The notes: generated from the sequence alone by a model not told the origin. DNA of 64,000 nt from Bugula neritina (GCA_964035545.1 OZ037773.1:4121751-4185750); one strand, 5' to 3'; counted from the stretch's first letter, positions 5,069 to 62,605 are shown. Translations and numbers: made by a program.

Positions 5069-5085
5069 ATTCGTTTGTAGTGTAA

Positions 5086-14334: not shown

Positions 14335-14361
14335 CAGGACCTTTAACTACTCACTATCACT

Positions 14362-17300
14362 ATGATGTTATATCTCAGCTATCTGATGTGTTTGTTTACT
14401 TGTATTTCATGTGAGTAATGCTTCTCATTGTGTCTAATAAAATCAAGATGCAAATACATAATATAATTAGTAATTACTATTGGTTGTATTTGAGTGATAT
14501 ATCATAGGTTGTGTGTAAAAGTCTGTAATAAAGATAGTTTGCTTAAGACATACCTACTGTATGCATCAAAAACAGAAGATGACTGTGTATTTACAGGTGT
14601 TACATCTAGATTCTATTTTATTAAGTTACTGAGTAGGAGTCCATCACAGTGATATATGTACAGCTTGGGTGTTGTGTGCCAATCTGTATAAGCCCCTTAA
14701 CTTAGATATTAATTTGTACAGAAACCCAGGCCTTTATATTTGAGTTTCAGTGTGGTGGTGCTCCATAGTTCTGATAATTAGGTTGAACACTCACTATTAT
14801 ACCATAATAAATTATTTTTTGATGCTCTCCTTTAATTTCACAGTAACTATACATCAGGTGCCAATTGTTGCTGCTATCACAAAATTAAGGGAGCCACTTA
14901 AGTCTGGTGTATATATCTCATTATATCTAAAATTATATTACTCTTACTCAGGAAAGTCTAGTGTTATGAGTTTTGTTTTAAAATTATTCTATAAGCAGCT
15001 TCGAGTTGGTGGTGATTGAGTGCGGTACTAGTTGCCCCCCCCCACCCTCGGCATTTGGAGTTATTAACCCAAATTGGAGACCCTCTAAACTACTGCACTC
15101 ATTCACCCCTAACTCAGAGCTGCTTATAGAACCATTCTTAGTTTTACATGACTTCTAGATTTTGAGTCAAAACTTGCAGGAAGGTAATCCTGTTATAATA
15201 TAGTTATAAGTTGAGAGCATGGTCAATTGAAAAACTAATTTCTTTGGGGGAATCTTCCTTAAATAACCTATGTAATATTATAGATTTGTAAATAATATTT
15301 TTTAAAGTGTGTCAAAATCAATGTATAAATAACAAATCTTGAAAGTGGATGAATGCAATAAAAAAACGTGAGCCATTTATTAAGCATGCAATTAATCTAT
15401 GAAATCGATTGAACTGATGACCATAGAACGTTTCTATATTTAGCTCAACCAACCACAGAGATATCCTACGGTTCTCCGCCTGCAGCGTTTTATAAAGATA
15501 AAATGACATCACTAGTATGTAGCGCATCTGGTTTTACTGCTTTGAGAAACTTTCAGTTGCGGTACGAGGATGATGGACACGATGCAATCTATAGAAGTGG
15601 ATGTAGTACAAGTCCTGAGGATGACACAATGTGGGTTAGTGCATCAACACCAGCCATTGCAACTGCATCTGGGATAGAAGGACCCGTAGTTAGTCATGCA
15701 GATTGTGAATCAGTTGGTAGACCTGAGGGGTTCACTCTTACTGTGAGACTCGTGATAACTGATCCAGCCATTCAAGGAAAGTTTTACTGTCGAGGGTATG
15801 AAGGGGGCGGTGTGGGAGAAATTTTTTCCCAAGAGATATCAGTACAAGTGAAAGGTAATTTCTTTACCTTCTTTTGAACAAACAGTGTTTTATTGAAAAT
15901 GATCATAATTGATCAAACCTTCCCCATGCTGTGGAGAGTAACAAGGGTTCCTGAACACGTAACTTACCATGTTCCAGCTCCAGAGAGCAATGTTCACAAT
16001 TACATGGATGAGCTCATAAAGCGCATGAGGACGGCTCACTGTCAAATTTTCAGTTTCAAGCTTATATTCAAATGTTATTATAAGGATTGTCCTCTTTTGC
16101 AAGAATTAGTTTTTTGCTTTACAGTTGGTCCTCAAAGTTTGATTCTCAATGCATCTGATGCAGTAGAAGGTGAAGTTCTAAGCTTTAGTTGTGAGTCCAG
16201 AGATGCTAAGCCTATCTCAGTGTATGAGTACAGTAGGTACAAGGTGTACTATACATGTTTTAGTCTATTATATTATTAGCTAAGATTCCATTGTAACTGG
16301 CTCTGGTGCCGAATATTCTCTCCACATGTCTTAAATTTATACAATTTTTTGTTTTAATAAGTTTTGCATTTTTTATTGGCTGCAGCATAACAAACTTGTA
16401 GTGCTTTATACAACCATGGTATTGACATAAGCTCAGAGAACTATTTTCTATTCAATAATACAATGTTTCACTCATTTTCTTTTCTTATGCTTTCACTTTT
16501 TTTAATATAATGTACTTTCAGAAGTGAATAACCAGTCAGTCTCTCCGCCTACTTATACTCCTGAGAAAGCTGACAGAGATGGAGTGTTGATATCATGTAG
16601 AGATATTATTCATACAAACTGGAAAGATGGAAATACTGAAGCTTCAGTTTTGCTCAAGCCTAAATGTAAGTAATAATTTCTAAACCGATTTCAACTTGTA
16701 AACTAGGTACATAAAGCATTGACTCATAGACTTTGCATTTTTTTACATCTAGTGATATACAGAGAGTTGAATTGGTAGCTTCATTTTCACCAGTCGCTTA
16801 GGAATAAAATATCAGCTGTAGAAATTTTGCAAGTCAAGTTAAAACTCTGCTATTTTTTATTTTTGATCTTAGGAAATTTGCATTATTACATTTTATATGA
16901 TTGTAAATTCACTAAGAAGATTCAAAAATGCATTCTATGAATTTTGTTATTATTTTTGTTTTAAGCACAAAATGTTTTCATCTTTGATAATGCATGCAAA
17001 CCTCCATTTGTCAGTTATACTAAAATCTCCTACTGTTACATTATGTTTGTCATTATCATGTTTATAGACATCGATGTAAAATCAGAAGTAGAAAATCCAA
17101 CGACAATACAAGTGATTACTGAAGATGGTGATGTAGAACTAGACTGTGATCTACATGTTACAGGAAACCCAAAACCAACCATCTTCTTCTGGGTACGAAA
17201 CGGGACTGAACAATCAGAAGAGACAAATAACAAGTTACTCCTGACTGCACAGACTGCTGGTACAAAAGAAACAGTAATGTGTACTGCTGGAAATTCTCTG

Positions 17301-17815
17301 GGTTTGTCCTTTAAAATGTTGCATTACTTATAAATAAACTATGAAAAATTGATTAACTTATCACATTGGATTAACCATAGATATCATTATTGTGTTTCGT
17401 AAACTTGAAACCTGTTCCACTTGAGACGTAGAGATAACATACATAAAATATAGTCTACGAATTGTACATTTACATAGAAACAGCAAATCCTATTACAAAG
17501 TGTTAAATGGGTCATAAATTTCAAATTACATATTCAATATAATATATTGTATTATTGTACAACATTATTACTAATTAACATGTCATCTTATACAACAGTG
17601 ACTTCAGTAATAAAGAAGTAGCTGTCAAATAATATATACTATAATTATTTCACTATACAGGAAAGAATGTGACTGTAACATGGCATATAGAATGGGACAG
17701 CATTTCAGAAAAAAGTTCCAATGATGCTGAGACTAACTATCAAAGCAACTTGATGACTCCCTGGAGCCTATCAGTTATCATCTTCTCCTTTGCTTGGAAA
17801 TATTTTTTACCTTAG
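14362..17815 (+). CDS. Ig-superfamily cell-surface protein copy A (signal peptide, V-like, C2-like and I/C2 domains, GPI-type tail), 366 aa; exons 14362-14410, 15444-15854, 16125-16232, 16522-16665, 17068-17301, 17661-17815
   Basis: Leader MMLYLSYLMCLFTCISS; Ig cysteine motifs LVCSASG...GKFYCRG, FSCES...LISCR and LDC..VTGNPKP.IFFW...VMCTAGNSLG; hydrophobic C-terminus with no cytoplasmic tail. All introns are phase-1 GT-AG; 1101 nt open. Confidence 0.85.
14978..15138. mobile_element. Short foldback MITE in intron 1 of copy A (duplicate at 34178-34332 in copy D)
   Basis: ~50-bp inverted repeats: ttctataagcagct..gagttggtggtgattgagtgc / gcactcattcacc..aactcagagctgcttatagaa. Confidence 0.7.
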
Positions 17816-19952
17816 GTTTTTTTCTATATCTTTGATATATATGATAAGATGAGTTTAAAGAAGTTTTAGCATTTAATTTTCCAAATGTTATTGAAAATTT
17901 TTGTTAACCAAGTTAATGTAATTACGCTAAGCATGCAAGAACAAATACATAAATATAATATCAGTCATTTCGTTCTTGTAGAATTGTATGCAATCAGAAA
18001 TATAGAAACATATTACGTAACAGAGTGTAAACTTAGTAACCAGATACCATTGTTTTCGACAAGTCCTAATACATTTTTATAATAATCAAGTTATAAAAAG
18101 TCAGTTAAAACATTGATTTTGCCTGGTTTGTTCAATAATAACAATGGTATGTATATAACTACTGTAAGAAACCTCTTAACCTGTATATTGTTTATGAAAG
18201 GTTTGAGAAGTAGCGTTTGTAGAGAGCATTACTTCAGAATAATTACTGTGTACATAATAGAAACAAATATCCTAAACAGAGTTATGTGAACATCTCACAA
18301 TAGAATGATAGAGAAATAACTTTGCTTGTAAAGCATTCTCAACTATAACTCTAGGTCAGCATATAGGCTTGAGTAGTAATCGGTATAACTAACTTTAGTG
18401 CATTAGCTGCCAGAATAGAGTTACACTACAGTTTGAGAGTTGTAGGCATTTTGTAGGAGAGATGTATATGAGGTGCAGGTAGGCTGTTTACCTGCACTAA
18501 CACATGTGCTGGAGAAAAACTGGGACTGTATGGGAGGGCCTGAGTACTTTCTGGGGCTACCTGGGGTTACCCAGTGCTAACTGTTTTGAAAACATAATTT
18601 ACACATAATTTCAATCACTCATCAGTTATAAGATAATAATCAACATTATATCTTCAAAATATTTTTAAACGATTGCTATATATCTATGAACTGTTGATCA
18701 GCTTAGGTTATACTTATTTCTTTGCATTTCGCTGTTTTTAAATGATAAAACAAATTCTTCTCTAGTTTCTATTTTGGGTGCTGTTTAGTAAGCAGGTGAG
18801 AAAATAGTTTGCAAACCTGGTGAGAGACAAGTTTTCTCTGGTTCTATAGTAAAGTGTGAGTTGCTAAAATAGATCGAGTTTAATAATTAACTGGTGGTAA
18901 GTTTGATTGAACATTTTAAGCATTGAGGTTGACATTTCACTTTTTGAGCCTAAATAATTATTAATATTCTTTCAACTGATAAAAAATTTGTAATTTTCCT
19001 ACTACTCAACTTATTTAACAGTATAGGCATCAAGTAATCTGTCTATTTTAAAAAGTTATCACTATTAAAAGTTATTTCGTTAAAAGAGGTTAATTGCATG
19101 CAGGTTGTAGATTATAATATGAGTAAGCGTTTTTTCCACTTTTTACTGCAACTGAATGTTTTAGGAAGATGACTTGTACCTGGTTAACCACAGTTTTAGT
19201 GTTGGCTCTATCTCGCTACACACTTGGTATGTATATATTTCAGGTGTTTTTTTAGGTGTGTTGTAAGTTGTAGTAATTGAGAAGGCAACTTCGAGTCTTC
19301 CAAAATATTTATAAAACCACCAGTTTGATATAAATCTTGTGCTTACATACAGCTGTCAGTACAGTTTTGCAATAATTTTAAATTAAGTTTTAATACATGC
19401 ATGTTCAATAATTAGCTAGCGTTGAAGTATATTTAGATTATGTTTTTGGTATTTATTATAAAGTAAGCAAAATCAGTATTTAACAACAATTAAGCTAAGT
19501 TATTGGCATAGCCAGAAATACGTTATAGCAATGTATGTATTTATCTGTCTCAAAAACATTCATCATTTGAAAAGTACTGTTTATGTATTAATTGTTTATG
19601 ATTCACACGCTATATACCCTTGAATATTAACATAAATCTATATACAGAATCAAGGATGCTTAGACACCTACTATATATATAGGTACTAAAATTAGCATCA
19701 TTCAACTTACACTTTAGCAGTAGCTATATCAAACCTGACTCTCAACGAAATAGCTGTGTGCTAGTTTGCAATCAAGTGTTGTGTACATGCAGGTAAACAT
19801 CCGCAGAGGGTTTTGGACAGACATACTGTTTTATGTATTTAGCTGTTGCTACAATCAGTATATATTGTATTAAAAAATTAAACCTTCTGTATGGATTATT
19901 TTTACGTATAGCTTTTAGTGAAATGTTCAGATGGAAACTTTTTATTTTTTAG

Positions 19953-22660
19953 CACAGCCATCTGCAGAGATAGATTACACTTCTCTAAGCGCACCGGATA
20001 TGTATATAAATGAGAGGATATCTTTCAATTGCAAAGCATCTGGTTATGCTGACATGAGAAGCTTAAGGTTATTAAACGAGGTTGATGGAGACAACACTGT
20101 TTACAGAAGTGGATGCGTTCCAAGTTCTGAAAATGACACAGTATGGGTGAGCTTCTCAACACCAGATATTACAACTGTCTCTGGAGTAGAAGGACCTGGA
20201 GTCAGTGACGCATACTGTAGAGCAGTTGGCAGAGCTGAAGGGTTCGCTCTTTCTGTGACACTCAAGATGACTGATTCGACAATTAGAGGAAAGTTTTACT
20301 GCAGAGGATATGAAGGAAGAGGTGTGGGAGAAGTTGTTTCTCAAGAAATAATGGTAGAACTTAAAGGTATTTAATTAATTTTTTACACTTGGAAAAATTA
20401 AAATAAATGATAAAATATGACTAATTCATATTCAACAAAAATTAGTTCCCTAAGAAATTCAACCAAAGTAGGTTTTTACTGGGTTATTAAAACTTTACCC
20501 ATGGTGCACTATAAGCGTCCACATCACATGAGACATTTTTTCATGAACACTTTTCAACGCTTTTGTAAAAATCATAAGAAGTGGTCACAAAAAAGCAAGC
20601 TGCAATTTTTTGTGGAGCTCAATCATTGAATGGTGTATTAATTTGAGTTAGATCACCATAACTGAAAATAAATTTGATACGCAAAGGGGGGGGGGGTTTG
20701 AAAATGGAGAAATTGGACAAGTTGTGTCTCTATTAACAAAGTTTTAGCTTGTGGACGTCAAAGGTTTGTTTATTTATTATAAAACTATCTACTTTCATGC
20801 ATTAATAATTGTGTATTTGTTATACTTGTGCTGGAAATTGACTGCTTTGTAATGTTGAACTACTGAAAGCTAAAATGAAAGCTACTGTCAAATTTTCAGT
20901 TTTAGGCTTATATTCAAAAGTTATTAAAGATTGTCCTCTTTTGTAAGAGTTTGTTTTTTGCTTTACAGTTGGTCCTCAGAGTTTGAGTCTCAATGCATCT
21001 GATGCAGTAGAAGGTGAAGTTCTAAAGTTTAGTTGTGAGTCCAGAGATGCTAAGCCTATCTCAGTGTATGAGTACAGTAAGTACAAGGTGTACTCTACAT
21101 GATTTAGTTTGTTATATTATTAGCTATAGTTCAATTGTAACTGGCTCTGGTGCCGATTATTCTCTCCACATGTCTTAAATTCATACAACTTTTGTTTTAA
21201 TATGTTTTGCTTTTTTTATTGGCTGCAGCATAACAAACTTGTAGTGCTTTGTACAACCATGGTATTGATATAAGCTCAGAAAACTTTTTTTCTATCCAAT
21301 AATACAATGTTTCACTCATTTTCCTTTCTTATGCTTACACTTTTTTTAATATTATGTAATTTCAGAAGTGAATAACCAGTCAGTCTCTCAGTCTACCTAC
21401 ACTCCTGAGAAAACTGACAGAGATGGAGTGTTGATATCATGTAGAGATATTATTCATACAAACTGGAAAGATGGAAATACTAAAGCTTCAGTTTTGCTCA
21501 AGCCTAAATGTAAGTAATAATTTCTAAACCGATTTCAACCTGTAAACTAGGTACATAAAGCATTGACTCATAGACTTTGCATTTTTTACATTTAGTAATA
21601 TACAGAGAGTTCAATTGGTACCTTCATTTTTACCAGTTGCTTAGGAATAAAATATCAGCTGTAGAAATTTTGTAAGCCAAGTTAAAACTCTGCTATTTTT
21701 TATTTTTGTTCTTAAGAAATTTGCATTATTACATTTTATATGATTGTAAATTCACTAAGAAGATTTAAAAATGCATTCTATGAATTTCTTTTATTATTTT
21801 TGTTTTAAACACAAAATGTTTTCATCTTTGATAATGCATGCAAACCTCCATTTGTCAGTTATACTGATATCTCCTACTGTTACATTATGTTTTTCATTAT
21901 CATGTTTATAGACATTGATGTAAAATCAGAAGTAGAAAATCCAACGACAATACAAGTGATTACTGAAGATGGTGATGTAGAACTAGACTGTGATCTACAT
22001 GTTACAGGAAACCCAAAACCAACCATCTTTTTCTGGGTACGAAACGGGACAGAACAATCAGAAGAGACGAATAACAAGTTACTCCTGACTGCACAGACTG
22101 CTGGTACCAAAGAAACAGTGATGTGTACTGCTGGAAATTCTCTGGGTTTGTCCTTTAAAATGTTGCATTACTTATAAATAAACTATGAAAATTAAATAAC
22201 TTATCAGATTGGATTAACCATATATATCATTACTGTGTTTCGTAAACTTGAAACCTGTTCCACTTGAGACGTAGAGATAACATACATAAAATATAGTCTA
22301 CGAATTGTGCATTTACGTAGAAACAGCGAATCTTATTACAAAGGGGTTACTGGGTCATAAATTTCAAATTACATATTCAACATATTATATTGAATTATTG
22401 TACAACATTATTACTAATTATCATGTCATCTTATACAACAGTGACTTTAGTAATAAAGAAGTAGCTGTCAAATAGTATATACTTTAATAATTCACTATAA
22501 CACAGGAAAGAATGTGACTGTAACATGGCATATAGAATGGAACAGCATTTCAGAAAAAAGTTCCAATGATGCTGAGACTAACTATCAAAGCAACTTGATG
22601 ACTCCCTGCAGTTTATCAGTTATCATCTTCTCCTTCGCTTGGAAATATTTTTTACCTTAG
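19953..22660 (+). CDS. Ig copy B; exons 19953-20366, 20969-21076, 21366-21509, 21912-22145, 22506-22660; leader-like exon (~19736-19792) lacks ATG and contains an in-frame TAG
   Basis: Five open phase-1 exons paralogous to copy A. The start codon could not be identified, so this may be a pseudogene. Confidence 0.7.
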
Positions 22661-24822
22661 GTTTTTTTCTATATCTATGATATATATGAAAAGATGAGTT
22701 TAAAAAAGTTTTACCATTTAAATTTCCAAACTTGTTGAAGGTTTTTCTTAACTAAGTTAATGTAATTACACTAAGCAAGAACAAATACATAGATATAATA
22801 CCAGTCATTTCGTTCTTGTAGAATTGTATGCGATCAGAAATATAGCAACATATTACGTAACAGAGTGTAAACTTAGTAACCAGATACCATTGTTTTTGAC
22901 AAGTCCTACTACATTTTTATAATAATCAAGTTATAAAAAGTCAGTTAAAACATTGATTTTGCCTGGTTTGTTCAATAATAACAATGGTATGTATATAACT
23001 ACTGTAAGAAACCTCTTAACCTGTATATTGTTTTTGAAAGGTTTGAGAAGTAGCGTTTGTAGAGAGCATATCCTCAGAATCACTACTGTGTGTATAGAAG
23101 CAAAATTCCTAAACAGAGTCATGAGAACATCTCACAATAGAATGATAGTGAATAACTTTACTTGTAAAGCATTCTCAACTATAACTCTAGATCAGCATAT
23201 AGGCTTGAGTAGTAATTAGTATAACTAACTTTAGTGCATTAGCTGCCAGAATAGAGTTACACTACAGTTTGAGAGTTGTAAGAATTTTATAGCAGATACA
23301 TATGAGGTGCAGGTAGGCTGTTCACCTGCACTAACACGTGTATTAGAGAGAAACTGAGACTGTATGGGAGGGCCTGAGTACTTTCTGGGGCTACCTGGGC
23401 TTACCCAGTGCTAATTGTTTTGGAAACATAATTTAAACATAATTTCAATCACTCATCAGTTATAAGATAACAATCAACATTATATCTTCAAAATATTTTT
23501 AAATGATTGTTGATACATTTTTCTACATATTACACAACAATACACAGTGTGTTTTAATTTGGTATATATCTATGAGCTGTTGCTCAGCTCAAGTTATACT
23601 TATTTCTTTGTATTTCGCTGTTTTCAACTGATAAAACAATTTCTTCTCCAGTCTCTACTTCGGACACTGTTTAGTAAGCAGGTGAGAAGTTAATTTGTAA
23701 ACCTAATGAGAGACAAGTTTTCTCTGGCTTTATAGTAAAGTGTGAGTTGCTAAAACAGAGTTTAATAATCAACTGGTGGTAATTTTGAATGAATATTTCA
23801 AGCATTGAGGTTGACATTTGACTTTTTGAGCCTAAATAATTATTAATATTCTTTCAACTGATAAAAAGTTTGTAGTTTTCCTACTACTCAACTTATTTAA
23901 CAGTATAGGTATTAGGTAATCTGTCTATTTTAAAAAGTTATCACTATTAAAAGTTATTTCGTTGAAAGAAGTTAATTGCATGCAGGTTGTAGATTATAGT
24001 ATGAGTAAGGGTTTTTTCCACTTTTCACTGCAACTTAATGTTTTAGGAAGATGACTTGTACCTGGTTAACCACAGTTTTAGTGTTAGTTCTATCTTGCTA
24101 CACACTTGGTATGTATATATTTCAGGTGTTTCTTTAGGTGTGTTGTAAGTTGTAGTAATTGAGAAGGCAACTCCAAGTCTTACAAAATATTTATAAGACC
24201 ACCAGTTTGATATAAATCTTATGCTTACATACAGCTGTCAGTACAGTTTTGCAATAATTTTAAATTAAATTCTAATACATGCATGTTTAATAATTAGCTA
24301 ACGTTAAAGTATATTTAGATTATAGTTTTGGTATTTATTATAAAGTAAACAAAATCAGTATTTAACAACAAGCTAAGTTTTTGGCATCGTCAGAAATACG
24401 TTATAGCAAAGTATGTATTTATGTGTCTCAAAAACATTGATCATTTGAAAAGTACTGTTTACGTATTAATTGTTAATTATTCACACGCTAAATACCCTTG
24501 GATATAACATAAATCTATATACAGAATCAAGGATGTTTAGACACCTACTCTATATATAGGTACTAAAATTAGCATCATTCAACTTGCACTTTAGCAGTAG
24601 CTATATCAAACCTGACTCTCAACAGAATAGCTGTGCTAGTTTGCAATAAAGTGTTGTGTATAGGTAAACATCCGCATATGGATTTGGACAGACACACTGC
24701 TTTATGTATTTAGCTGTTGCAACACTCAGTATGTATATGTTATATTTAAAAATAAGTCTTCTGTATGGATGATTCCTACATAGCTCTTAGTGAAATGTCT
24801 GATGGAAACTTTTTATGTTTAG

Positions 24823-29288: not shown

Positions 29289-29496
29289 GTATGCATAACT
29301 CAATTTAGCTGATTATCATTCATACTAATTTAATTTGTATAAATCTGTTGCTTATTTATAGTATTGAGTTTCACACTTCTTGCCATATCCTGACCGGGTG
29401 GCAGGATTAGGTTTCACATTCACTGCCAGTAGACTTTGCCTATTTCAGGTGTCGACTCTTATCTTTGTAAGGAGGTTTTTTCTTGTGATTTGTAGA

Positions 29497-31484: not shown

Positions 31485-31890
31485 GTGAGTCACATTGTTA
31501 TATATTTTGTGGTAGATAACTCCTAAGTGAGTCACATTGTTATATATTTTGTGGTAGACAATTGCCAAATGAGTCCCATTGTTATATATCTTGTGGTAGA
31601 CAATTCCCAAATGAGTCACATTGTTATATATCTTGTGGTAGACAATTCCTAAGTGAGTCACATTGTTATATATCTTGTGGTAGACAACTCCTAAGTGAGT
31701 GACATTGTTATATATTTTGTGGTAGACAACTCCTAAGTGAGTCACATTGTTATATATTTTGTGGTAGACAACTCCCAAATGAGCCACATTGTTTTATATT
31801 TTGTGGTAGACAACTCCTAAGTGAGTCACATTGTATATATCTTGTGGTAGACAACTCCCAAATCAGTCACATTGTTATATATCTTGTGAT
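31466..31890. repeat. 42-bp minisatellite, 10 copies (2 copies at ~12939-13028)
   Basis: Unit gtggtagacaactcctaagtgagtcacattgttatatatttt, with 42-bp spacing (31471, 31513, 31555...31848). Confidence 0.93.
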
Positions 31891-32289
31891 AGGTGAATTC
31901 AAACACACCATTTTTTATTAAATGATCAATGGCTCTTGCGTGATTTGACTGAAATATTTCAACTAGATGGTATTATATACAATCTGTAGAAGTCTCCTGC
32001 TCAACATGTTTACTTACGTATTAATCGTAGTACTATCTTTTTACATAAAAGTAAACAAAAGAAGCATCCTGACAAGAATATAAATGATATAGAAATTGAT
32101 AATTACAGACTATTTTTGTGAAAATAATTTATTCTTTATTTTACGCTTATGTTTATGTGTTGTTTTTTTTAATATAGGTGTGTGCTAGTTGGGCTGGACC
32201 TAATAAGAAGTATTGGTGCTTAAGAGGAAAGTGTAGATAGATGGGATTTGTGAATCAGTTAAAATAGGAAACAACTTATAGTTACCATC

Positions 32290-32703
32290 ATTACTACTAG
32301 TAGCAGTAGCACTAGTAGTAGTACTAATACTAGTAGCTGTGATACTAGTGGTAGTAGTAGCAGTAGCACTAGTAGTAGTACTACTAGTACTAGTAGCTGT
32401 GATACTAGTGGTAGTAGTAGCAGTAGCACTAGTAGTAGTACTAATACTAGTAGCTGTGATACTAGTGGTAGTAGTAGCAGTAGCACTAGTAGCTGTGATA
32501 CTAGTGGTAGTAGTAGCAGTAGCACTAGTAGTAGTATACTAATACTAGTAGATGTGATACTAGTGGTAGTAGTAGCAGTAGCACTAGTAGTACTATTAAT
32601 ACTAGTAGCTGTGATACTAGTGGTAGTAGTAGCAGTAGCACTAGTAGTAGTACTAGTACTAGTAGCTGTGATACTAGTGGTAGTAGTAGCAGTAGCACCA
32701 CCA
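32290..32703. repeat. Compound (GTA/CTA)n minisatellite, expanded relative to 13428-13512
   Basis: Repeated unit agctgtgatactagtggtagtagtagcagtagcactagtagtagtacta. Confidence 0.9.
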
Positions 32704-47000: not shown

Positions 47001-50000
47001 TACAAAAAATTAATGAGAAGCATGAGCAGGTTGATTTGGACTCCGGAAGATAATATTTTAAATGTGTACAATTGAGCTTTGCCAATAAATTTAAGCTGAA
47101 CTATATATAAATAAGCAATTTGGTTTTTAGCACAATGCTATTGGTTAAAATGCCTATTTTTATACTATCTTGATATAATGACTCTAGAGTCAATTTATCT
47201 TAGTTATAGTTACAGAAGAAATACCCTAAAGCTTCCCTATAATTTAAAATGTATATGGTTATATTTCGACCACCCATTAGAAAAATGATCTTGGGATGCC
47301 TTATTCAAAGATCATTGACATAAAAATTTTTCATGTGTGCCATTTATCACAAAAATAATAATTTCTTATCAGCACAACTCAAATGGTAACAATTAGATTA
47401 TGAGGAAGCAGATACGAAAACTTTGTTACATGCAAAATATCTTATAAACATCATAATCTCACGTGTAATAATGAAATCTCAATCTTTCATTCTAAGTCTC
47501 ACTATTTGCAAAACATTACCTTCTTACCAATTGTATTTTTTCACGGGTGTGGTAATCGTGGTGTCATGCCAGATAGAGGCTAGGCTAAATTTCCCACTTA
47601 GACGCTAGTTATTTATTTTAGTAAAATGTATTTTCATGTGCAACTTATTTTAATATTATTGAAATATATGTATATTTAAATAAACTTGGATCAATTGCTT
47701 GTTATTTAGCACATAAATAAACTTCTTTGATTTGCATTAACTTATTAATTTTGTATATTCTATACATCTTGCCTGTTGTTTGAAAAGATATTTTGTTAAT
47801 AAGTATCCATTAAAGATAGTGTCTATGATTATTGTATTACTACTTTTTGTCCCACACAAATTCGAAAAATAATAGAATATTATTCTAGATAATTCATGTT
47901 AGCTACTATAGCTATTAACATATTAGCTATTTAGCAATCAATTCATCAGATATATAGGTAATAATAATATATATATGGTAACAAAATAAAAACAGCGTCT
48001 ATCTGGGAGGAAACCATAATCATATTAGGTATTTGGATGTCAACATTACAGCAAATAAATCCGAACCGCAGTTGTGTGCAGCACTTACTAGATTTCATGC
48101 TTCAACAGGTTGTGATTCGACTATAGTGCTTTTTATATGGAAAAGGATAGCGCACAGCCTACTCTCTTTTGAGAAAATATCCATAATGTATGGGAACCTT
48201 TGAACACATTGGGAAGTATTTTAAGCTGTAAGCCATTACAGTGGCTGAAGTAGAACACTTTGTCTATAAACTTTATGGAGCAGGAAATTTAAATATAGAT
48301 GATGTCCGATACACTGTATTTTGTTCACCGTCTAAAATAACTTAATAGAGTTTGCCTCCAACAAAAGATGAATTATATTTGCACATAAAAAGAGCAAATT
48401 ATTAGGCAGCCATTTGGAGAAGGGGGACCACAGCCACCCCCAGAACATCATGGAAGGATTGTTGAGAATTATGGCAGCATAAATATAAAGTGAATGATGT
48501 TGCAAAATTTAAACTGCTCCTGTAAGACCAGCTGCAACATATCAAGATGTGGATGTCAAAAGTCTCAAATGCAGTGCATGCACTGATGTTTGTCAATGTA
48601 AGGATTGTCTGAAAAGAAGCTCTATATTGGGGAAGAAGCTGATGAGACTGACGACAGTGAAAATGATTGGCGAGAATATTTTTTCATAATGAAGCACTAT
48701 TTTTAGACTTTTGTTATATATTTTGCTGCAACTAATCTGATTTGATCATCTCTCATGCTTCTGTTTCTTTAAATAATTTTGCAGAATCTTGTTGATTTTT
48801 GCAGACGTTTACCGACAGACTAGCAAATGATTCACTTGGGCTGAGCTCAAGAGATTTCAATATTTATTCATTTCAACATTTATTTTGTACTATAATTTTA
48901 TAAATATAGTTTTTTCACACATCAGCATGACTTTTTTATTTTTGTATAAATAGCTTGGTCATACAATTATTCTGCATGCTTATGCCTCATGCAATATGTC
49001 GATTCATAACAAACATATATGTTTATATAAACAACTTGGTTTTAATTATAGATAGCGTCTTGCAGTCTTTAAATTCAATATCAGCATAGCATTTCAAGTA
49101 AGAGACAATTATTTTTGGTATTTCAGCAAATATTTTTTCTTCAAGATAGCTTGATAAAATTGGATACTATTTAGCACAATCTACATTTCTTTTTATCACC
49201 CATCTAAAACGTCAATTTGTTTTTTGCAATAACTTGAGTTTGGGTAAAGATAAAATTTTAGAGTTTGTAAATTTAGAATCAGCACAACAACTTTTTTTGA
49301 GTGGCCACCTATAAGTAAAGTGTAATAAGCCAATTTTTTGAGCACTTTTTGAGAGGTTACTTCTAGACTATTTCTAATGAACTTAATTATTTGAATGCAA
49401 TGTAATTTCAGAAGTGAATAACCAGTCAGTCTCTCCGCCTACCTACATTCCTGAGAAAGCTGACAGGGATGGAGTGTTGATATCATGTAGAGATATCGTT
49501 CATAGAAACTGGAAAGATGGAAATACGGAAACTTCAGTTTTGCTCATGCCTAAATGTAAGTAAACATGCATGCAGACTACTGTTGAGTTTAAAAGTGATT
49601 GGGTTTGATTAAAAGTGCGGCAGGAAATTTTATAATTGCAATAACTACAAACAGAAATTGAAGGGTGAACAAGCCAATCATCATGCTAAACATACTTCCT
49701 AACTGTAGGTTTTATTACTATATTGTACCAGCACAAAAAAACTTTAATATTTTTTTATTGTCATGTTCATAGACATTGATGTAAAATCGGAAACAGAAAG
49801 TACAATAGAACTACAAGTCAAGGCTGAAGATGGCGCTGTAGAACTAGACTGTGATCCACATGTTACAGGAAACCCTAAACCAACCATCTTCTTCTGGGTA
49901 CAAAACGGGACTGAACAATCAGAAGAGACAAATAACAAGTTACTCCTGACTGCACAGACTGCTGGTACCAACGAAGCGGTGATGTGTACTGCTGGAAACT

Positions 50001-53000
50001 CTCTGGGTTTGTTCTTTGAAACTTGTTGCTGACAAAACAACTAATAATCACTTAGCTTCTAGATATAGTGACAATTGACATCACTATTGTATTTCAAAGC
50101 AGATTTTCAACTTGACTCAAAGAAAAGCTGCATTTCTATATCTATATTAGAACAGCAAACTATATTACAAAAGGTTTGATAAATTATCAAGGTCGAATTT
50201 GATGCTATATACTTTTATAATAATTGTGTAACATTAAATAATACTACCATCAGGGTTTATACGTTACATCTCTTAATATATAGCATCGTTTTATTTATAA
50301 CAGGAATCTTATAGTATATTAAAGCTGTTAGCCGGTGCACTTCAGTTATCTAATTACAGGAAAGAATGTGACTGTAACATGGCTTATAGAATGGAATATG
50401 ATGATTACCATAGCAGGTGAGAAAGTCATATACTTTTTAAAAACAATATTGATGCAGCATTAAGCAGTAAAATGATAATAATATAGTGCTATTTAGATCA
50501 TCTGGCATTTCATAGAATGTATTGTATAATATGATCGCATATAAAATGCTGCTAGTTTCTCCTATTGCAGATAGTATGTGTAGCATGTGACATCCTATAT
50601 AATAGTACCCTTACGAACTAGTTAGTGTAAAAGATATCACGACAAGCTATATATTTCATTAGATTATAGTATCATGCAAGATTATGTAGTTTAATTATCT
50701 CTCTACAGAAAAGGATGTGACTGTATCCATGAATACAGAATCCAACGGCGTGACAGCTGTAACAGGTGAGCGTTTTAGAATGTTTACAGTTTGATCACAA
50801 ACATTTACCCTCTTGAAAGCTTATTATTGTAATGGGATTACGTAGTATAATAATGGGGTCGTCCCCTCCTATATGGAATACTTATAACTATGTTCTACTA
50901 TCCAATCAGAAGGACCGGAAGACAAGGTTCCGGTCAAGTGACTGTGCGCGGGTTAGCTAGCAGAAACCATGCGTTGTTGAGAGCAGGGACTCGTAGTAGT
51001 AACATGTGTTTATAATTGATTGATGTATTGTGGTATTCTGATATAATGTTATAATTATGTTTATCGGGTTAAATAAAGGTTATCGTACGCAAGCTCTATT
51101 AGTAGTTGCTAGTTAAATTGACATTCAATACGCAGGCAATCCACGCTTGATAATTGTGCTAAAACTCACAACAGTGGTGGCAGCGGTGGGATTTTGCGTA
51201 TATCAAGATGACAGAAAGAGGCACAGAGCTACCCATTCGGAGAAATAAATGTGAGGAAGATAACGTTGCTATACCTATAGAACCAGAAGTGAGAGTGCAT
51301 AGGGAATGTTATGAAGAGAAGTACTGGCTGAGGGTGCCCACCTTCTCAGGTGAGGAGCCGGTGGAGCAATTCGTTCAGGAATTCCAGGATGTAATGAAGG
51401 TTGCACAGTGGCCACCCCGAATAGCATTGCTCAAGCTCTGGATGGCGCTGTCAGACAAAGCCAAGCCATACGGAGTGGAACCGGACATCGACGGGATCTT
51501 TGCCTCCCTGCGGGCCCGTTTTGGTATTTCCGCTGTAGATGCGCGGGCCCGTCTCCAAAGACTGCGGCGTGATCCTCACACGCCGCTACAAGAGCACGCT
51601 ACCACGGTAATGAGGCTGGCGCAGATCGCGTTCCGCGATCTGCCGCAAGTAAACCGTGAGAGGTACACTTATGATGCCTTCATGCAATCCATCAATGACT
51701 TGGGACTCCTTCACCAACTCCTGGCGAGGGGAGTCACCACGGTCGAAGGTGCGCTTGCAGAAAGGGAAGCATACCTTCTGGCCAGTCAGCTGCACCGAAA
51801 CCGTGTGACTTCTCGTCAGGTGGACATGGAGCCCTCCGCTGCTCCTACCGCTTCTAACGCGAAAACCCCAGCGGTGGCCAAGGTGACGCAGATGACGGTG
51901 GCATCGAAGGTCACACAAATGACCGACATGCTGGCCAAACTGGTCTCCGCCTTGGCCCCTCTCAGCCAGCTAGACACCACCCGTGAGCTTGACGGGCCAC
52001 TGGTGCAGTCGCCTGGTAGAGGACACCCCTCCTGCTGGGAGTGCGGAAGACCAGGACACTTCCAGAAACACTGTCCCCGACTTCAACCAGGGTTAAACTA
52101 CGACGACTCGCGGATGCTCCCACATCCGGCGGGCCGCCGATAAAACCCCAAGGGAGAACACAGTGGGGTCCGCCACGCCGGACACCCGTCCGGGACCTCG
52201 CGGAACGGCCACCGGGACGGCAAGCAGGCTGTACAAGCCGCTCGCCGCCGGTATTCTCCATGCCACCCTGCAACAGGTTCGACAAACGACGAACCGCAGA
52301 GTCTGCGAGGGGAAGAGCCCTTCGGCAGCTGGTCCCCAGTCGTTGTCAGGAACCTAACCCCTCCGCCAGGGCGAGGGAGATGAGGTCACCCAAGATACCA
52401 CTACATCCCCACGAGAGCAGCCTGTTTCTACCAGAACAGATAGCCGGCAAGCCTGCCAAATTCCTGTTAGACACAGGCTGCACCACCAACCTCCTGGGTC
52501 GTCGATTCTTCGACACACTCAGCGCTCAGATCCGAAGCAGGTTGGGACCGTACGAAGGCGATCATGGCACCCTGGCAGACGGGTCGTGCATCCCCTTCTA
52601 CGGTATCATTGAACTCCCTGGGAGCGTCTGTGACTAGACCATCCAGGAGAGGTTCATAGTCGGACAGCTCCAAGAGGACGCCATCCTTGGGATGCCATTC
52701 TTACAACGACACGGGTGTCGCATCGATTTTGGCAAATCTGCGATGTTTATGGGCGGCCGGGAGCTTGCCTGTGTCGATAAGTTTGGCCATCCCCTAACGG
52801 GAGAAGAGCCGATAGTACGTACCTGTACTATGCCCGGCCACTCCCGGGACACCGTCCACCGCCAGGTAGACGGTGGCCGTACCTCCAGGCCGGGAGCTGT
52901 TGAGAGAGCGCACCCGAACGTCCCACCTGTCCACAGCTCTAACCAGCTGACACGGAGAGGAAAGACCTCGGTGCCATGCCTCCACTCACCCTCGGAGACG

Positions 53001-56000
53001 GTGAATCTACCACCCACCTCTCCACCAAGCTGTACTCCTTCTGTTCAAGAAGATAACAGCAGGCCATCGCGGGAAACCGCGATGGGAAGCCCTCTAGAGA
53101 GCCCGTCTCCGGGGCGAAGGACTGCCTCACCCCACGCCCCACACAGCCAAGGGACTCATGGGAGAGAATCAGACGGTTGCGTAGATAACGAGAAGCGCCA
53201 AGAGACGGCCACGTTACTACACAAAACCGAGGCTACACCTCACCTTGGGGATCCTGACATGCCCCCAGAGGCGGCACAGGACCTCCACGCCGAACCCGTC
53301 TCAGCCGATGGCGTCAAGGAGCTACGACACCTCCAGGAACAGATTCCGGGGGTGGTAGCCGACGTCTATCAAATTAAACGGGAAGGGCGACGACCCAGTG
53401 ACAAACAACGGAAGCAGGGCTGCGCCGAGTGGCAGCTGTACTGCCGACGTTGGAACGCACTGCGGATCGAGCCGGATGGTCTATTGACCATATCTTTGGC
53501 CGCTAACCACCACCAGCCAGACCAGGAGAGAACTCTCTGTCCTGCCGCCATCCGCTGAGAGTTGATAGAAGAGGTACACCAACAGGCTCACTGGGGAGCC
53601 CAACAGGTGCTCACCGAACTACAACTCTGGTAGTATTGGCCTAACATGAAGCGTGAAGTACGGCGCAGAGTTAGGCAGTGCGGAGTCTGCCGGGCCAGTA
53701 AGCACGGCCGCCCTCCTGACAAGGTGGGGCGGCGAAGGCAAAGTGCAGACAGACCCGGGCAGACGGAGACTGCTGACCTGGTCAACAAACCGCCCAGGAT
53801 GCAACCCAAAGCAGTGGCGAGGCAGAAAAAACCACACCCGTTCAGGGAAGTGCGCTCACCGCCTCCAGCGTACAAGCTGCCGCCACCACTTCCTAAGTTA
53901 GGAACCGACCGGGAAGTGCAAAACCCCCCCACTGGAGGGGCTCCGTACGGAGATTCTAGGAAAGCTCCATTTGTCATAAACTGGCTGGAGGCACCACCCG
54001 TGAGACGTGACCGTCCACGGGTGAGTAAACCGCCTTGGTTGGTGACGACACCTCGGAAACGGTGTTCTAGACCAACCCCCGCGTATCTCAAGGACTTACC
54101 ACGTGCCGTTCAGGGCGCGGTCAAACGTCCCACGAGGCACCGTACGGGGAAGAGAGCAAGGTGTGGGAGTTGTGAACACCACGAGAATATCAACTTTTGC
54201 TTCGGCGGAATCTCAAACGAGATTCATACGCCGGAAGTAATTAGCCCTAGCCACGTTTCACAACCACGCTGCTCGCTCTTTCATCACATTGATACAGCTT
54301 TGAGTAGACGTACGTAGAAATCATAAACATACCACTCTCATTCATAATGGCTTGCCAAGAATCGAGAGGTGAGTTAGTTATGTTTTTGGTACGAGGACTA
54401 AACTGTATTAATCAGCTTAACTGTAACAGAATAAGCTGGAGACTCGGTAATGATTTTTAGTGGTGGGAATTCACATTGACTCTAAGACTGAACAGTCTGT
54501 TACAGCAGTGTGTGTTTTCGATCAACTATTCATTAGCTGAGTCTCACAAGTGTCTAATTGAGTTAAGTACCCACCAGGCTGTATACGCCGGTTGTACTCA
54601 GTGTACCCTCTTACACTGTTATACTCTTGCAGATCACACTCAATTGACCAACTCCGGGTCACAAGATCTACACCCCCTCTCCTCCTTGGACAACAGACCG
54701 GAAACGGACAACGGACTGCCCGTGGCACTGCGTCGAAGACATAAATAGGTGTCACGACGTACGGAGCGGCAAATTGAAGAAGCCTGGGGACCAAGTGGCT
54801 CACAACGAACCTGCCATGTGTGTTATGAGGAGCTGCCCTCGCACCAAGGACTACGGCTGCATGTAAATGCACACTTCCTATTACGCTTTTTTGCTTTCTT
54901 GTGTGTTCTCCAAACTAAAAGAACCACTATGAACTTAACCATCCTTTCATCTATTTCACGGTCTGTCTCTCTAACACCACTGATATCATGGATATCATTT
55001 TCATCTTTTTTCCTGGTGAATGCTTGATGTAATGCAGCTTAAATGGAAAACACATCCAGGTGACTTGGTGATGTTACTTGTAACTAAAGGCGGTTTTTTT
55101 TATTTCAAATCTGTACAGAGAACAAAGAGCAAGCAATGGTTCCGGCAGCCAATTTGAATAGCCTGAACCCTTCTGATTCTGAATCCCAACCCACTAGTTC
55201 AGTTTGGGAATCTAAATTACTATCAAACTTTGAGGGTTTTGCCATGTAAAAACTGAGTATAGTGCCTGTAACATATTTCTATTTATATTTTCCTAATTAG
55301 TATCAACATTGTCAATAATTGTGTTTTTGATGATTTAATTTTTTCATGGTTGCCTTTATTGAACTATGTATAGGTTTTATAAGTTTCATATTCATATTTA
55401 ACAATTTCAATAATTTTGAATAGATGTTTTTTAATTAATATTTAATTTTCTCTTCACTACTGTGCTTTAACTTATGCTACATATGTATGCACATTGTGAT
55501 AAAGTTGAATAATAAAGTCAATTATGATAAGAAGGCTAAAATGAATTTATTAATCATCTCACAGATCACACTGCATGCAAATACACAAATACTAACTTCA
55601 TAGCCATCTTTAATGGACAAAGGTGAGCTATAGGGTCATAGTGGCAGACAACAGAGCCACGAGTCAGTAACCATGTGTATACAGAACATACAGTGTTACT
55701 AGAGCATATCATATAACAGCTTACCTGTAGGAGTATATGCAGTTCATAACAATATTTACATACACATTCTAGTAAACTAAATCTGATTGATCTTGAAGTA
55801 AATTACAAAAAATGTATAATTTAATACTTTTTGTATTTTCAAATGCATATACATTGTTTGTAGAAAATATTGTACTTTAACAACTGATTCACAAATTTTT
55901 AACCAATTGCAGTTCACATTTATTCTTTAGCTAGTACAGCCAATGTTTTCAGACTATCCCCCTCCCCGTATTCACACGTTAGTATCCTATGTCGTAACTG

Positions 56001-59000
56001 CAAATTTTAGCCATTTTTGTCAACATTTGGGCTGAGTCATATCTCGGTATATGTTGCGGCTTTATTATTTTGGAACATACAAGGGAAGGATTTTAAATAT
56101 GTTTGATAAGAACAGCTGATAATGAGAGAATGACTCCTAATTGACACCAATATTGTGTAATCTATAAAATTATTATTTGCAAACAATATAAAATCAAATA
56201 TATAACAATGTTGCATTGTTGAATATTTTAAAAAAAAAATTTCTTATGATTCCATACATTCTTTACATCACAAAACAAAACAGCTTCATAGACATCACAA
56301 AATTAAGTTTCTTCTATAAAAGTCTCTAGATTCTAAATAACTCTAAGTTAGATACTCATCTACTACTGTATATAGGCAGGACCTTTAACTACTCACAATT
56401 ACTATGATGTTATATCTCAGCTATCTGATGTGTTTGTTTATCCGTATTTCCGGTATGTGATGTTTTACAGTACTTATCGAACTCAAAATACAAATATAAC
56501 AAAATGATTATGCAATCATATTTTAGAAAATACATTACAGCCAATTTGCGTTAATGATAGTTTTTCTAATGCAAACAATAAACAAAATAGCTGCAAAATT
56601 AGTGAATGTAAGTCTAAGATGTCTCATCTAGAGTTTATTTACCAAACCACTGAGTAGAAGCTTACCATAGAAACTCACACAGCGTTATAGATTATTTGTA
56701 CCAATCAATGATGTTTCTTCTATGGAGTTGGTCATGATGTAGGTTCCAAGTTTAATATTTCCATGTGTACAAAAAGTAAAGCTAGAAAGGCTTCAGATTT
56801 TAGTTTGACCAATAGGATAAATGCATTATATTACACCCTAATGCAATTTTTATCAATGCTTTGTTTATTTCTTTTCTATGTTATACAAAACAACATCAAA
56901 ACACTGTTGCCACCGCTATAACATATAAAAGCAGCAAAACACTGTATATTTATCTCATGACTTTACCTTTATTATTTTCTTCAGTTAGGATTGTCAATCT
57001 GCGTAGGTTTTATTCAATATCTTTATAGTAAGTTTTATGATGTCTTGCAAAAAAAAGGCAACATGCAGTAGTGGACAGTTATATAGAAAACTACTTTAAA
57101 AATAATAAACTGTAAATAATTTTTACATTCAGCTAAACCATCTGCACTCATAGACTACAATCCTGGGAATGGACCAGAGGTATATAAAGATAAGAATATA
57201 GCTGTATTCTGTGTGGCATCTGGCTATACGGATTTGAGAAGCTTACAGCTACAATATCAATCTGATATAGAAGACAAGGTTTACAGCACTGGATGTACTC
57301 GAAGTAGTGGAGATGACACTGTGTGGGTTGCTTCATCAACCCCAGACATAGCTACGATACCTGGTATAAAAAGACTTGGCATTAGTGATGCAGACTGTGG
57401 ATATGCTAGCGAGTCTGATGTATTATCTTTTCTTTTTCAATTCACAATAACTGAGTCAACAACTGGAGGGAGTTTTTCCTGTAAAGGGGTTGAAGGAGGT
57501 GCCGGAGAAATTTCTTCCTCAGAAGTACCAGTAGATGTCAAAGGTCATTATTTTCAAGTTTTAGTTGAAACAAGCAATGGGTATAAAAAAGGATTATGAA
57601 TGATGTATTACGCAAGCATTCAAATTTCATAAAACAAGTGCTTTCTTGACTCTTTACATAAAAATTTCCATTGGGTTAATTTATTTAATATAAAGAAAAG
57701 CTTTGTAATGTTTAATAAATTGTCGCATACAGTGTTGTTTGTTAAGGCAAATATTTCTAATTTATGAAATATTACTTGAAAGAAACTTAAAAATATTTTA
57801 ACAGACCATTGATGCAGTCAATGTATTCTAAATTTGTCAAGCTTTAAGGCGCAATAAAGATCTTTTTTAAAAACCACATGTTCTACAGTTTCCACCTGAA
57901 TAAATGCAACCATATGTTTTTTTGTGGAAATCAATCATCGAATGAGTTCGGTTGTTGCAAAGAAGATCAAGGTTTGCAATTTGAACTGCCAAAGCTAAAA
58001 CTACAATTTTGACATTCATCTGATCGCTATTTAAAATTGCTAATCTTTTAAATTTTTGCTTTACAGTTGGTCCTCCGAGTTTGATTCTTAATGCATCTGA
58101 TGCAGTAGAAGGTGAAGTTCTAAACTTTAGCTGTGAGTCCAGAGATGCTAAGCCTGTCTCAGAATATGAGTACAGTAAGTAGAAGGTTTTTTACGTTTTT
58201 ATTCTATTGTATCAAATTGACCGAAATAATTTGGCTACATATTTATATAAGTTTTTTACTATATAATTGTCTGCTCCCACCATCAACAGAAAAACTGTTG
58301 AAAACTAGCACTAAAACAAATAAAATTTTGTTGAGCGTGTTAGTCTAATGTTGCGCATTTATGCATTCACAACTTTTAGTCAAAATATATACATTTGACC
58401 TAGTTGAAATTTGCATTGTAAAAGCCACTGTCAAAATTGCTGTACCGTGTGATTAATTAATCAGCCTATATCAGATTAATAATCAAAAGAACTAATAACT
58501 CAGCGTAGATATGAGTATTTGATCATTACTTTGTATATAATCATATGAGCAACATTTTCACGATTATACTTTCTCTTTTATGCTGTCAACCTTTTGAAGG
58601 GGCATCAACTATCAATTGAGTGAGTCGTGTTTCACTATTAGAAAATCAGTTTCCGCATCAATATGATTTTAACGAGTTTTAGTAAAACTATGAAGGGGTA
58701 ATATTGTAGTGGGCAGTAGAGCGTAAGGCCACGCGCTCACTAACCACTCATCATTAAAACACGTGATTACCCTCCCCCCTCGGCAAAGTAGAAAGGCTTC
58801 AGGACATGGTGAAAACGGTCACTGCAATCATACCTCGGCCAGACAACACCCCCATGGAAGCATCAGACTCTCCAGAAGAAGCGACGCCAACTCCAACCAA
58901 GCCTAACCGACTAGCAACTGTTGAGGAAAGACTCCTACGACTGCAGGATGAATTCACCCAATTGGCCCCCGACTTACTCAGCACTACAATGAGCCTTAGT

Positions 59001-62454: not shown

Positions 62455-62605
<151 letters not shown>

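Follow-up and report, generated by a model that had tools for sequence, protein, structure and literature searches.

How do the genes of one tandem array keep half of each product nearly identical from copy to copy while the other half diverges, most of all in a single short loop? The question is raised by a 64,000-nucleotide window of chromosome 9 of the bryozoan Bugula neritina (4121751-4185750; positions below count from its first base), in which a tblastn search with the first variable (V) domain exon found seven full copies on the + strand, in genes here called A to G. A reading made from the sequence alone had proposed short-tract gene conversion and diversifying selection on a ligand-binding loop carried by a homogenised constant region. 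Our analysis supports, with a probability of about 0.7, an array of bryozoan immunoglobulin (Ig) receptor genes with a concerted constant half and a micro-converted, selected hairpin between strands C' and C'' of the V domain.

The genes share one layout: a leader exon, a V exon of 136 to 137 codons, a second Ig domain in two exons (Ig2a and Ig2b), a third Ig domain (Ig3), and a last exon that encodes the G strand of Ig3, a stalk rich in Ser, Asn, Asp, and Ala, and ~16 hydrophobic residues directly before the stop codon. When the exons of gene A were aligned to the other copies, ag/gt was found at every junction and all introns were in phase 1, so that each exon has two split-codon bases at its start and one at its end. 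The concatenated exons of gene A leave the frame open through to the stop. V coding starts at 15446 (A), 19955 (B), 24825 (C), 34639 (D), 39173 (E), 44078 (F), and 57135 (G). The gene models are as follows.

Gene A, 14362-17815, + strand: leader 14362-14410; V 15444-15854; Ig2a 16125-16232; Ig2b 16522-16665; Ig3 17068-17301; tail exon 17661-17815, including the stop.
Gene B, 19169-22660, + strand: leader 19169-19226; V 19953-20366; Ig2a 20969-21076; Ig2b 21366-21509; Ig3 21912-22145; tail exon 22506-22660.
Gene C, 24051-27729, + strand: leader 24051-24108; V 24823-25236; Ig2a 26073-26180; Ig2b 26471-26614; Ig3 27012-27245; tail exon 27575-27729.
Gene D, 33566-37004, + strand: leader 33566-33614; V 34637-35044; Ig2a 35313-35420; Ig2b 35710-35853; Ig3 36257-36490; tail exon 36850-37004.
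Gene E, 38398-41875, + strand: leader 38398-38455; V 39171-39584; Ig2a 40185-40292; Ig2b 40580-40723; Ig3 41125-41358; tail exon 41721-41875.
Gene F, 43262-50416, + strand: leader 43262-43319; V 44076-44486; Ig2a 45015-45122; Ig2b 49412-49555; Ig3 49773-50006; G-strand exon 50360-~50416, with a gt donor.
Gene G, 56404-61205, + strand: leader 56404-56452; V 57133-57543; Ig2a 58067-58174; phase-1 tail-like exon ~61070-61205.

Genes A to E stop immediately after the hydrophobic C terminus and have no cytoplasmic residues; this terminus is most likely a glycosylphosphatidylinositol (GPI)-anchor signal. The Ig3 exon of gene C contains an in-frame TAA (27116-27118), and gene C is probably a pseudogene. 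Gene G is truncated and lacks Ig2b and Ig3. Gene F has a 4.3-kb intron between Ig2a and Ig2b and a split last exon, and its tail exon was looked for and not found. Two types of leader occur, one shared by A, D, and G and the other by B, C, E, and F, both with hydrophobic cores and phase-1 donors; these candidates come from relaxed criteria, a strict leader-exon search having found none.

The contrast between the two halves of the genes is as sharp as first described. The Ig3 exons of A, B, and D encode identical protein, while C differs by two changes in addition to the TAA, E by three changes, and F is 81% identical. Domain 2, described earlier as nearly identical, differs among A to E by 0 to 2 residues in exon 2a and 1 to 4 in exon 2b. 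In contrast, the V domains of A and B, put at roughly 55% identity by eye, are 55.1% identical, and those of A and D 85%. The constant exons of A and B have a synonymous divergence (dS) of only 0.04 to 0.12, against 0.69 for V. The 500 bases upstream cannot be aligned between A and B, and Kimura two-parameter (K2P) distances are 0.37 in V and 0.58 in intron 1, within which similarity rises abruptly.

A-B similarity jump, 16038 in intron 1 of A (20884 in B), + strand: from unalignable or 74% identical to ~92% identical.

Downstream of 16038, A and B are only 3 to 9% diverged, introns included; intron K2P is 0.04 to 0.11. The V domains of A and B are 54 to 63% and 56 to 64% identical, respectively, to those of the main clade of paralogues, which is about the same as to each other. 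The Ig2 and Ig3 exons of the window are only 36 to 54% identical to that clade, compared to 94 to 100% among A to E and 81 to 91% between these and F. An old V split joined to near-identical constant halves cannot be fitted by a single duplication age. One constant half has been spread over old V lineages.

A second contrast, between A and D, points to gene conversion.

A-D conversion tract, 17207-17844 (~36396-37033 in D), + strand: 0.64 kb of almost identical sequence covering Ig3, intron 4, and the tail exon.

The tract holds 68 consecutive matching polymorphic sites (run test, p<=0.0002) and reaches ~17050 if one mismatch is allowed. A-D K2P distances over Ig3, intron 4, and the tail are 0.004, 0.003, and 0.000, compared to ~0.09 to 0.11 in most flanks (intron 1, 4.6%). 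Because the tract is nearly identical within diverged flanks, homogenisation is still going on. Informative splits differ by segment, with 72 sites joining A and D in V, 7 versus 0 joining A and B in intron 3, and 7 joining A and D from Ig3 to the tail; the trees are therefore incongruent along the gene. The proposed homogenisation of the constant region is well borne out by the A-B and A-D comparisons.

Gene F differs in the form of its similarity. Its constant exons are close to those of A to E (dS 0.04 to 0.23), with the 3' two-thirds of Ig3 almost identical (49556-50006 versus 16666-17301), and its introns become unalignable within ~25 nucleotides (nt) of the exon edges. This points to either exon-limited conversion tracts or fast intron turnover. 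The repeat unit of F switches type at ~43865, within the leader-V intron, and joins a B-type leader to an F-type V, which is the same recombination pattern on the 5' side of V.

The identity of the diverging half was assessed from structure, each exon being searched and modelled on its own. No Pfam family, V-set (PF07686) included, was matched at E<=1 by the V exon of A, B, or F or by either Ig2 half-exon of A, and a profile of 35 V domains gave only chance-level matches to Protein Data Bank (PDB) sequences. An AlphaFold2 model built from the 35-domain alignment scored 88.9 for the predicted local distance difference test (pLDDT) and 0.85 for predicted template modelling (pTM) and contains strands A, B, C, C', C'', E, F, and G, with C' at residues 47 to 55 and C'' at 63 to 65. 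The top Foldseek matches to this model were all antibody, T-cell receptor (TCR), or nanobody V domains (E ~3e-5). A second structure search gave Z scores of 9 to 11.2 to TCR, CD8, and antibody V domains and of 9.3 to 9.5 to nectin-3 D1 and myelin P0 (nectin-3: 9.5 in 5b22, 9.2 in 4fom). For the TCR, antibody, CD8, and nectin-3 domains, root mean square deviations were ~2.6 to 3.1 A over 103 to 117 residues. Together, the modelled strands and these structural matches show a V-set fold.

Within this fold the strand B cysteine (C25) is present in at least 90% of the 35 paralogues and the strand F cysteine (C115) is invariant. Strand C lacks Trp41 and has an invariant, core-facing Leu38, 13 residues past C25; its equivalence to Trp41 is based on spacing and periodicity. 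All 35 copies have a second pair, Cys53 at the end of C' and Cys87 in a short helix that precedes strand E, which presumably forms a disulfide. The SGC and AYC motifs around these extra cysteines are also found in a relative from Watersipora. Ig2 and Ig3 are classed as small I/C2-type Ig domains; Ig3 gives only weak, sub-threshold Pfam matches (Ig_3, Ig_2, and I-set), and its exon weakly matches CADM4, contactins, and Robo.

The eight residues that follow the SGC or TGC of the first extra cysteine differ in every copy, exactly as had been listed: STSPEDDT in A, VPSSENDT in B, IPNTEDNT in C, TPSSEDNT in D, GLSPEDNT in E, IRSSGGDI in F, and TRSSGDDT in G. On the model, this loop is the C'-C'' hairpin, at the position of complementarity-determining region 2 (CDR2). 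Alignment entropy and the model together delimit the variable segment.

Hypervariable hairpin of A, 15605-15643, + strand: 13 codons, starting with the one next to Cys53 and ending three past Trp63.
Hypervariable hairpin of B, 20117-20155, + strand: same segment.
Hypervariable hairpin of C, 24987-25025, + strand: same segment.
Hypervariable hairpin of D, 34795-34833, + strand: same segment.
Hypervariable hairpin of E, 39335-39373, + strand: same segment.
Hypervariable hairpin of F, 44240-44278, + strand: same segment.
Hypervariable hairpin of G, 57297-57335, + strand: same segment.

Among 28 paralogues, the hairpin holds the top three entropy columns and five of the top eight, the highest being the first residue after Cys53 (2.49 bits) and the first after Trp63 (2.32 bits). 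For the pairs B-C, B-E, and C-E, the density of differences in 15 loop codons is 4 to 6 times that of the remaining V codons (p 1e-5 to 3e-4). These results confirm the loop as hypervariable. Its flanks, SGC and EDxTVW, are conserved, and no insertion or deletion was found in the loop in 31 copies (28 core copies, F, G, and L037). Variable and conserved residues alternate along the neighbouring strands (35, 37, and 39 versus 36, 38, and 40 in strand C; 46, 48, and 50 versus 49 and 51 in C'), which on the model suggests that the variation lies on the solvent-exposed side of the C-C'-C'' sheet. This face may bind a ligand.

The history of the loop is not that of the exon around it. Loop nucleotide distances showed no significant correlation with those across the remainder of the exon (Spearman r = 0.08), compared to r values of 0.46 to 0.77 in 24 control windows of equal size, which indicates that the loop is uncoupled from its framework. 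Every sampled paralogue was then tried as a donor to the loop, with significance judged against 400 column permutations, none of which exceeded the observed runs (p<=0.0025) in two genes of the window.

Conversion-like patch in E (HV1), 39331-39349, + strand: 7 consecutive informative sites match paralogue L022 (chromosome 9, ~0.99 Mb, ~3.2 Mb away) and not the sister copy C.
Conversion-like patch in B (HV2), 20135-20155, + strand: 9 consecutive informative sites match paralogue L014 (chromosome 9, ~0.03 Mb, ~4.1 Mb away) and not the sister copy C.

The tract in E is 19 to 30 nt long, bounded by sister-like sites at 39319 and 39350, and that in B is 21 to 28 nt long, with bounds at 20131 and 20160. 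The clearest case lies outside the window. The V frameworks of L006 and its sister L011 are identical and their introns and flanks 1 to 2% diverged, and the exons carry four differences within 20 nt; at these four consecutive sites L006 matches L003 (tract 20 to 38 nt, p<=0.0025), so that its loop is exactly the L003 motif. Triplet scans for C, A, D, F, G, and L011 gave nothing significant.

The sequence-only reading had based its case for conversion on two strings, each of which occurs exactly twice in the window: the 11-mer agtcctgagga, shared by E and A (15611 and 39341), and a 19-mer shared by E and D (34807 and 39347). Most of the 19-mer, which encodes EDxTVW, is near the family consensus, as are the Ser and Glu codons of the 11-mer, so these strings are weak evidence on their own. 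A role of A and D as donors to E is not supported, with runs of only 3 sites in largely consensus sequence, and L022 is the best match. Short-tract conversion as a process is thus retained through the mosaic loop and the patches in E, B, and L006, with different donors from those first named. We infer that conversion is the probable cause of the patches.

Selection was assessed separately for the four codons after Cys53 (HV1) and the three codons after Trp63 (HV2). Parsimony counts on the V tree gave an omega of 1.9 for HV1 (51.5 N to 9.5 S, p = 0.027), 0.71 for HV2, and 0.57 for the rest of V. In 13 independent sister pairs, pN/pS was 2.2 for HV1 (p = 0.11), 0.57 for HV2, and 0.52 for the rest of V. 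The third codon positions of HV1 are almost invariant, while the first and second positions take two to four states, a pattern that argues for selection on the amino acid and not hypermutation. Synonymous change is raised in HV2 (pS 0.28 versus 0.12), as expected with the import of diverged tracts. The dN/dS ratio is 0 to 0.18 for Ig3, which is under purifying selection, and 0.42 to 0.91 for the whole of V. The diversifying selection proposed earlier is suggested at HV1, where it is likely; the three outcomes that had been named in advance as telling against the proposal (low dN/dS at the variable sites, congruent exon trees, and no significant tracts) were not observed.

Several points weigh against conversion and selection acting on this loop. 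The pairs A-D (1.9-fold, p = 0.10) and F-G show no significant loop excess, and loop variation is absent among five near-identical versions of one orthologue in the databases. Applied to the entire V exon, a neighbour-incompatibility test of the pairwise homoplasy index (PHI) type gave no significant result (p = 0.12). Because sites are permuted in the run tests, these are favoured by a clustering of fast sites, and the named donors are the best among ~30 sampled of at least 70 copies. The HV1 excess is weak, since p = 0.027 comes from one tree that recombination violates and the pairs give p = 0.11, and omega in HV2 is below 1. Finally, given the fixed third positions of HV1, shared codons could arise by recurrent single-base change among few states. 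That last point is the core of an account without conversion, in which point substitutions recur in the loop as a hot spot, diversifying selection acts on them, and the few residues tolerated there produce convergent motifs. It draws support from the HV1 omega of ~2 and the PHI-like result, as well as from the identical codons expected by single steps when only first and second positions vary. It is hard to reconcile with L006 and L011, where the exons, otherwise the same over 391 nt, have four changes within 20 nt that together give exactly the L003 motif. Furthermore, E and L022 share a rare CTA codon plus three neighbouring states, and the nine consecutive HV2 sites shared by B and L014 include synonymous ones, in a segment where pS is raised. 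We consider recurrent substitution alone to be unlikely.

Still less likely is an ordinary birth-and-death family with a relaxed, unimportant loop, whose constant parts are alike through recent duplication and purifying selection. A whole-V dN/dS below 1, repeat units that are ~92% identical including introns, and the broken appearance of genes C and G all fit such a history. However, no single duplication age accounts for a V dS of 0.69 between A and B next to constant halves that differ by 4 to 11% with introns included, and between clusters the constant part is more diverged than V. A loop that keeps its length in 31 copies between conserved flanks is unlike a relaxed one, and its uncoupling from the framework is also contrary to birth and death. 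That the mosaics are assembly artefacts, from chimeric or collapsed repeats of the array, is very improbable. An 8,654-bp repeat at 100% identity does lie at the end of the window, and haplotypic duplication was removed manually from the published assembly (PMC11480708). However, that assembly was made from PacBio HiFi reads with a quality value (QV) of 53.7 (PMC11480708), reads that easily resolve copies diverged by ~8%; the patches are 20 to 30 nt long within otherwise copy-specific sequence; and independent contigs from metagenomes and the Sequence Read Archive (SRA) carry the same family with further loop motifs.

The explanation that we prefer, a concerted constant half with a micro-converted and selected hairpin, would operate at two scales. 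Unequal crossing-over, together with gene conversion on the kilobase scale, would have spread one constant half (Ig2, Ig3, and tail) over three old V lineages, A/D, B/C/E, and F/G, the breakpoints lying in the phase-1 introns that flank the V exon. Patches of ~20 to 30 nt would be copied into the C'-C'' hairpin from paralogues scattered along chromosome 9, so that a restricted repertoire of loop motifs is reassorted without regard to the V framework, and selection would then favour amino acid replacement in the four codons that follow the extra cysteine. These proteins most likely serve in germline-encoded recognition at the cell surface, whether immune, in allorecognition, or in cell identity, among which the data do not decide.

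The array belongs to a larger family. At least 70 V-exon matches were found in the genome, 58 of them on chromosome 9 in clusters at ~0.03 to 0.36, 0.7 to 1.09, 3.07 to 3.25, and 4.13 to 4.21 Mb. Among 1.84 billion database representatives, a word search found 12 matches and a HMMER profile search found 40, nearly all of them exon-sized open reading frames (ORFs) from metagenome or SRA contigs. Of the 40 profile matches, ten were looked up for a named source, and only Bugula neritina and Watersipora subatra were found. The protein matches from the Joint Genome Institute (JGI) and Logan were ruled out as evidence of expression, as they are unspliced genomic ORFs of exon plus intron. The five near-identical versions mentioned above (P0014 and P0049-P0052, from Logan SRR4020084 and JGI contigs) are of a B/C/E-type V exon and have 1 to 4 differences, all outside the loop; their loop motif is absent from the 34 paralogue V exons compared. 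This hints that the loop of this orthologue may not be highly polymorphic.

The Watersipora protein has a V-Ig-Ig-transmembrane layout and tyrosine motifs in its tail (TPYENI, NYEALI, and PYDSL). Two main-clade paralogues of Bugula (L043, 3487-3675, and L044, 2494-2670; chromosome 9 at 3.08 and 3.13 Mb) encode the G strand, a stalk, a transmembrane helix, and then basic residues. Unlike the GPI-type tail of A to E, these predict type I membrane proteins, and the coexistence of transmembrane and GPI-type members hints at paired signalling and non-signalling forms. The window cluster would then be the GPI-type branch of a receptor family known so far only from cheilostome bryozoans. The family is apparently restricted to bryozoans and undescribed: a literature search found nothing on an Ig family in Bugula and no paper describing this receptor family, and the 2020 Bugula draft-genome paper mentioned only "weak similarities" to Alr1 (PMC7576161).

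Eight tandem units of ~494 bp were observed at another locus, L031 (chromosome 9:3156500-3163500, - strand; ~1704-5575 of the reverse complement). Each consists of a V-type exon and a spacer of ~85 nt that contains an acceptor-like site; stops or frameshifts interrupt several of the units, and a donor remains only in the last. The tandem may represent a gene with multiple V domains, a cassette of alternative exons, or a bank in decay. It was set aside as a loop donor (3.157 to 3.162 Mb), its loops being uniform and unlike the motifs of the window.

The chromosome that carries the window is part of a genome of 216,009,554 bases whose largest pieces are 35.64 and 24.8 Mb. This corresponds to the published assembly tzBugNeri2.1, of 216.00 Mb in 9 chromosomes, the longest of 35.64 Mb and chromosome 4 of 24.8 Mb (PMC11480708). 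A contig of an older B. neritina draft is only 83% identical to this genome over 5 kb, which fits the known cryptic species inside "B. neritina." The layout of the array reflects duplication on two nested scales.

Segmental duplication, 10539-24655 versus 29291-43864, + strand: four blocks, 88 to 93% identical.

In a self-comparison, the largest block (13430-24655, 11.2 kb) equals 32624-43864 at 92.4%, so that the A+B unit corresponds to the D+E unit. Nested within it is a tandem unit of ~4.85 kb, 16038-20557 matching 20884-25429. An exon upstream of gene A (11221-11556) matches mitoguardin (Pfam Miga, E = 1e-32); because the D+E duplication also copied the upstream flank of gene A (29291-31556), a mitoguardin fragment probably lies between C and D.

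G+C content is 30 to 38% across the window, except for a 49% block at 52 to 56 kb. Between F and G, a G+C-rich block (51208-54317) contains ORFs with weak, sub-threshold matches to zinc-knuckle (gag) and aspartyl-protease domains and is probably a decayed fragment of a long terminal repeat (LTR) retroelement; its zinc-knuckle ORF begins 792 bases past the end of the G-strand exon of F (~50416), the gene whose tail exon is missing. An 8,654-bp unit that contains gene G (54885-63538) is tandemly repeated at 100% and continues beyond 64000; 54885-55346 equals 63539-64000, and the twin of the G V exon beyond the window is identical (L036, 1789-2196). The repeat reflects either duplication in the very recent past or duplication in the assembly. 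On the - strand, opposite to the array, 63125-63361 holds a degenerate fragment of a V exon, interrupted by several stops.

In the colonial bryozoans, no family of recognition or immune receptors has been described, and allorecognition genes were no more than a hope in the 2020 draft-genome paper (PMC7576161). One 64-kb stretch shows both forces of receptor-family evolution, homogenisation of the stalk and patchwork diversification of the loop, at different scales. The array pinpoints the exact 13 codons to genotype, and with the alternate haplotype of the published assembly allelic polymorphism of the loop can be tested directly. Should fusion, kin settlement, or symbiont handling prove to be under the control of these genes, they would add an independent origin of V-domain-based recognition. 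A bolder idea, which we regard as a long shot, is that chromosome 9 carries a histocompatibility-type complex of ~60 V-Ig-Ig genes, some with transmembrane (signalling) and some with GPI-anchored products. Micro-conversion among paralogues would diversify their CDR2-like hairpin, through which colonies, larvae, or gametes would recognise kin or tell self from non-self. If true, this would be the first molecular recognition system in Bryozoa, independent of those of cnidarians, tunicates, and vertebrates.

Known systems share parts of this pattern. Nectins and CADMs have the same order of three Ig domains, and the V model aligns to nectin-3 D1. However, nectins are transmembrane proteins with an afadin-binding tail and are few and conserved, whereas Bugula has ~70 V exons, a hypervariable hairpin, and a GPI-like tail; a cytoplasmic PDZ/afadin- or 4.1-binding tail of the nectin/CADM type is absent in A to E, where the stop directly follows the hydrophobic tail. 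The IgLON and DIP/Dpr families are GPI-anchored, multigene families of proteins with two or three Ig domains that act in neuronal recognition codes, and in this they resemble the probable GPI-type, three-Ig genes of Bugula, which could likewise specify a code at the cell surface. Unlike the latter, their first domain is I-set, and their paralogues are old and conserved, with neither loop hypervariability nor concerted evolution. Germline paralogues donate short patches to binding-site loops of Ig-type domains in micro-conversion at the major histocompatibility complex (MHC), from the pseudo-V donors of chicken Ig genes, in snail FREP, and in amphioxus VCBP. Compared to these short-tract systems, nothing in Bugula is somatic, and the V-exon bank at L031 is not an evident donor.

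The Alr complex of Hydractinia is also a large clustered family in a colonial invertebrate, with a V-set domain followed by two I-set-like domains (PMC9546547). Its V domain likewise goes unrecognised by the Pfam V-set model and is assigned to the V-set from its predicted fold; tyrosine motifs occur in the tails of some relatives (PMC9546547). Alr belongs to another phylum and lacks the Cys-Trp-Cys pin (PMC9546547), whereas Bugula keeps both cysteines and replaces Trp with an invariant Leu; Alr1 and Alr2 are proven allodeterminants (PMC9546547). The layout thus resembles that of the Alr complex, of which the Bugula family does not appear to be a member; no homology to Alr emerged, the only named sources among the ten profile matches looked up being bryozoan. 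The mammalian CEACAM/CEA genes come close in their evolution, as a tandem family with a fast membrane-distal V-set domain, conversion and concerted evolution among paralogues, and both GPI and transmembrane forms (PMC8860441, PMC7042247). In CEACAM, however, conversion mostly moves whole N domains, whereas in Bugula the constant half is homogenised and only V loop patches of 20 to 30 nt move. The Bugula V domain also differs in keeping the B-F disulfide and adding a putative second one. No sequence relationship to CEACAM was detected, and no CEACAM chain was found among the PDB sequence matches of the V profile or Ig3. The Bugula family is therefore an analogue of CEACAM and not a member, an undescribed family that shows a known evolutionary pattern.

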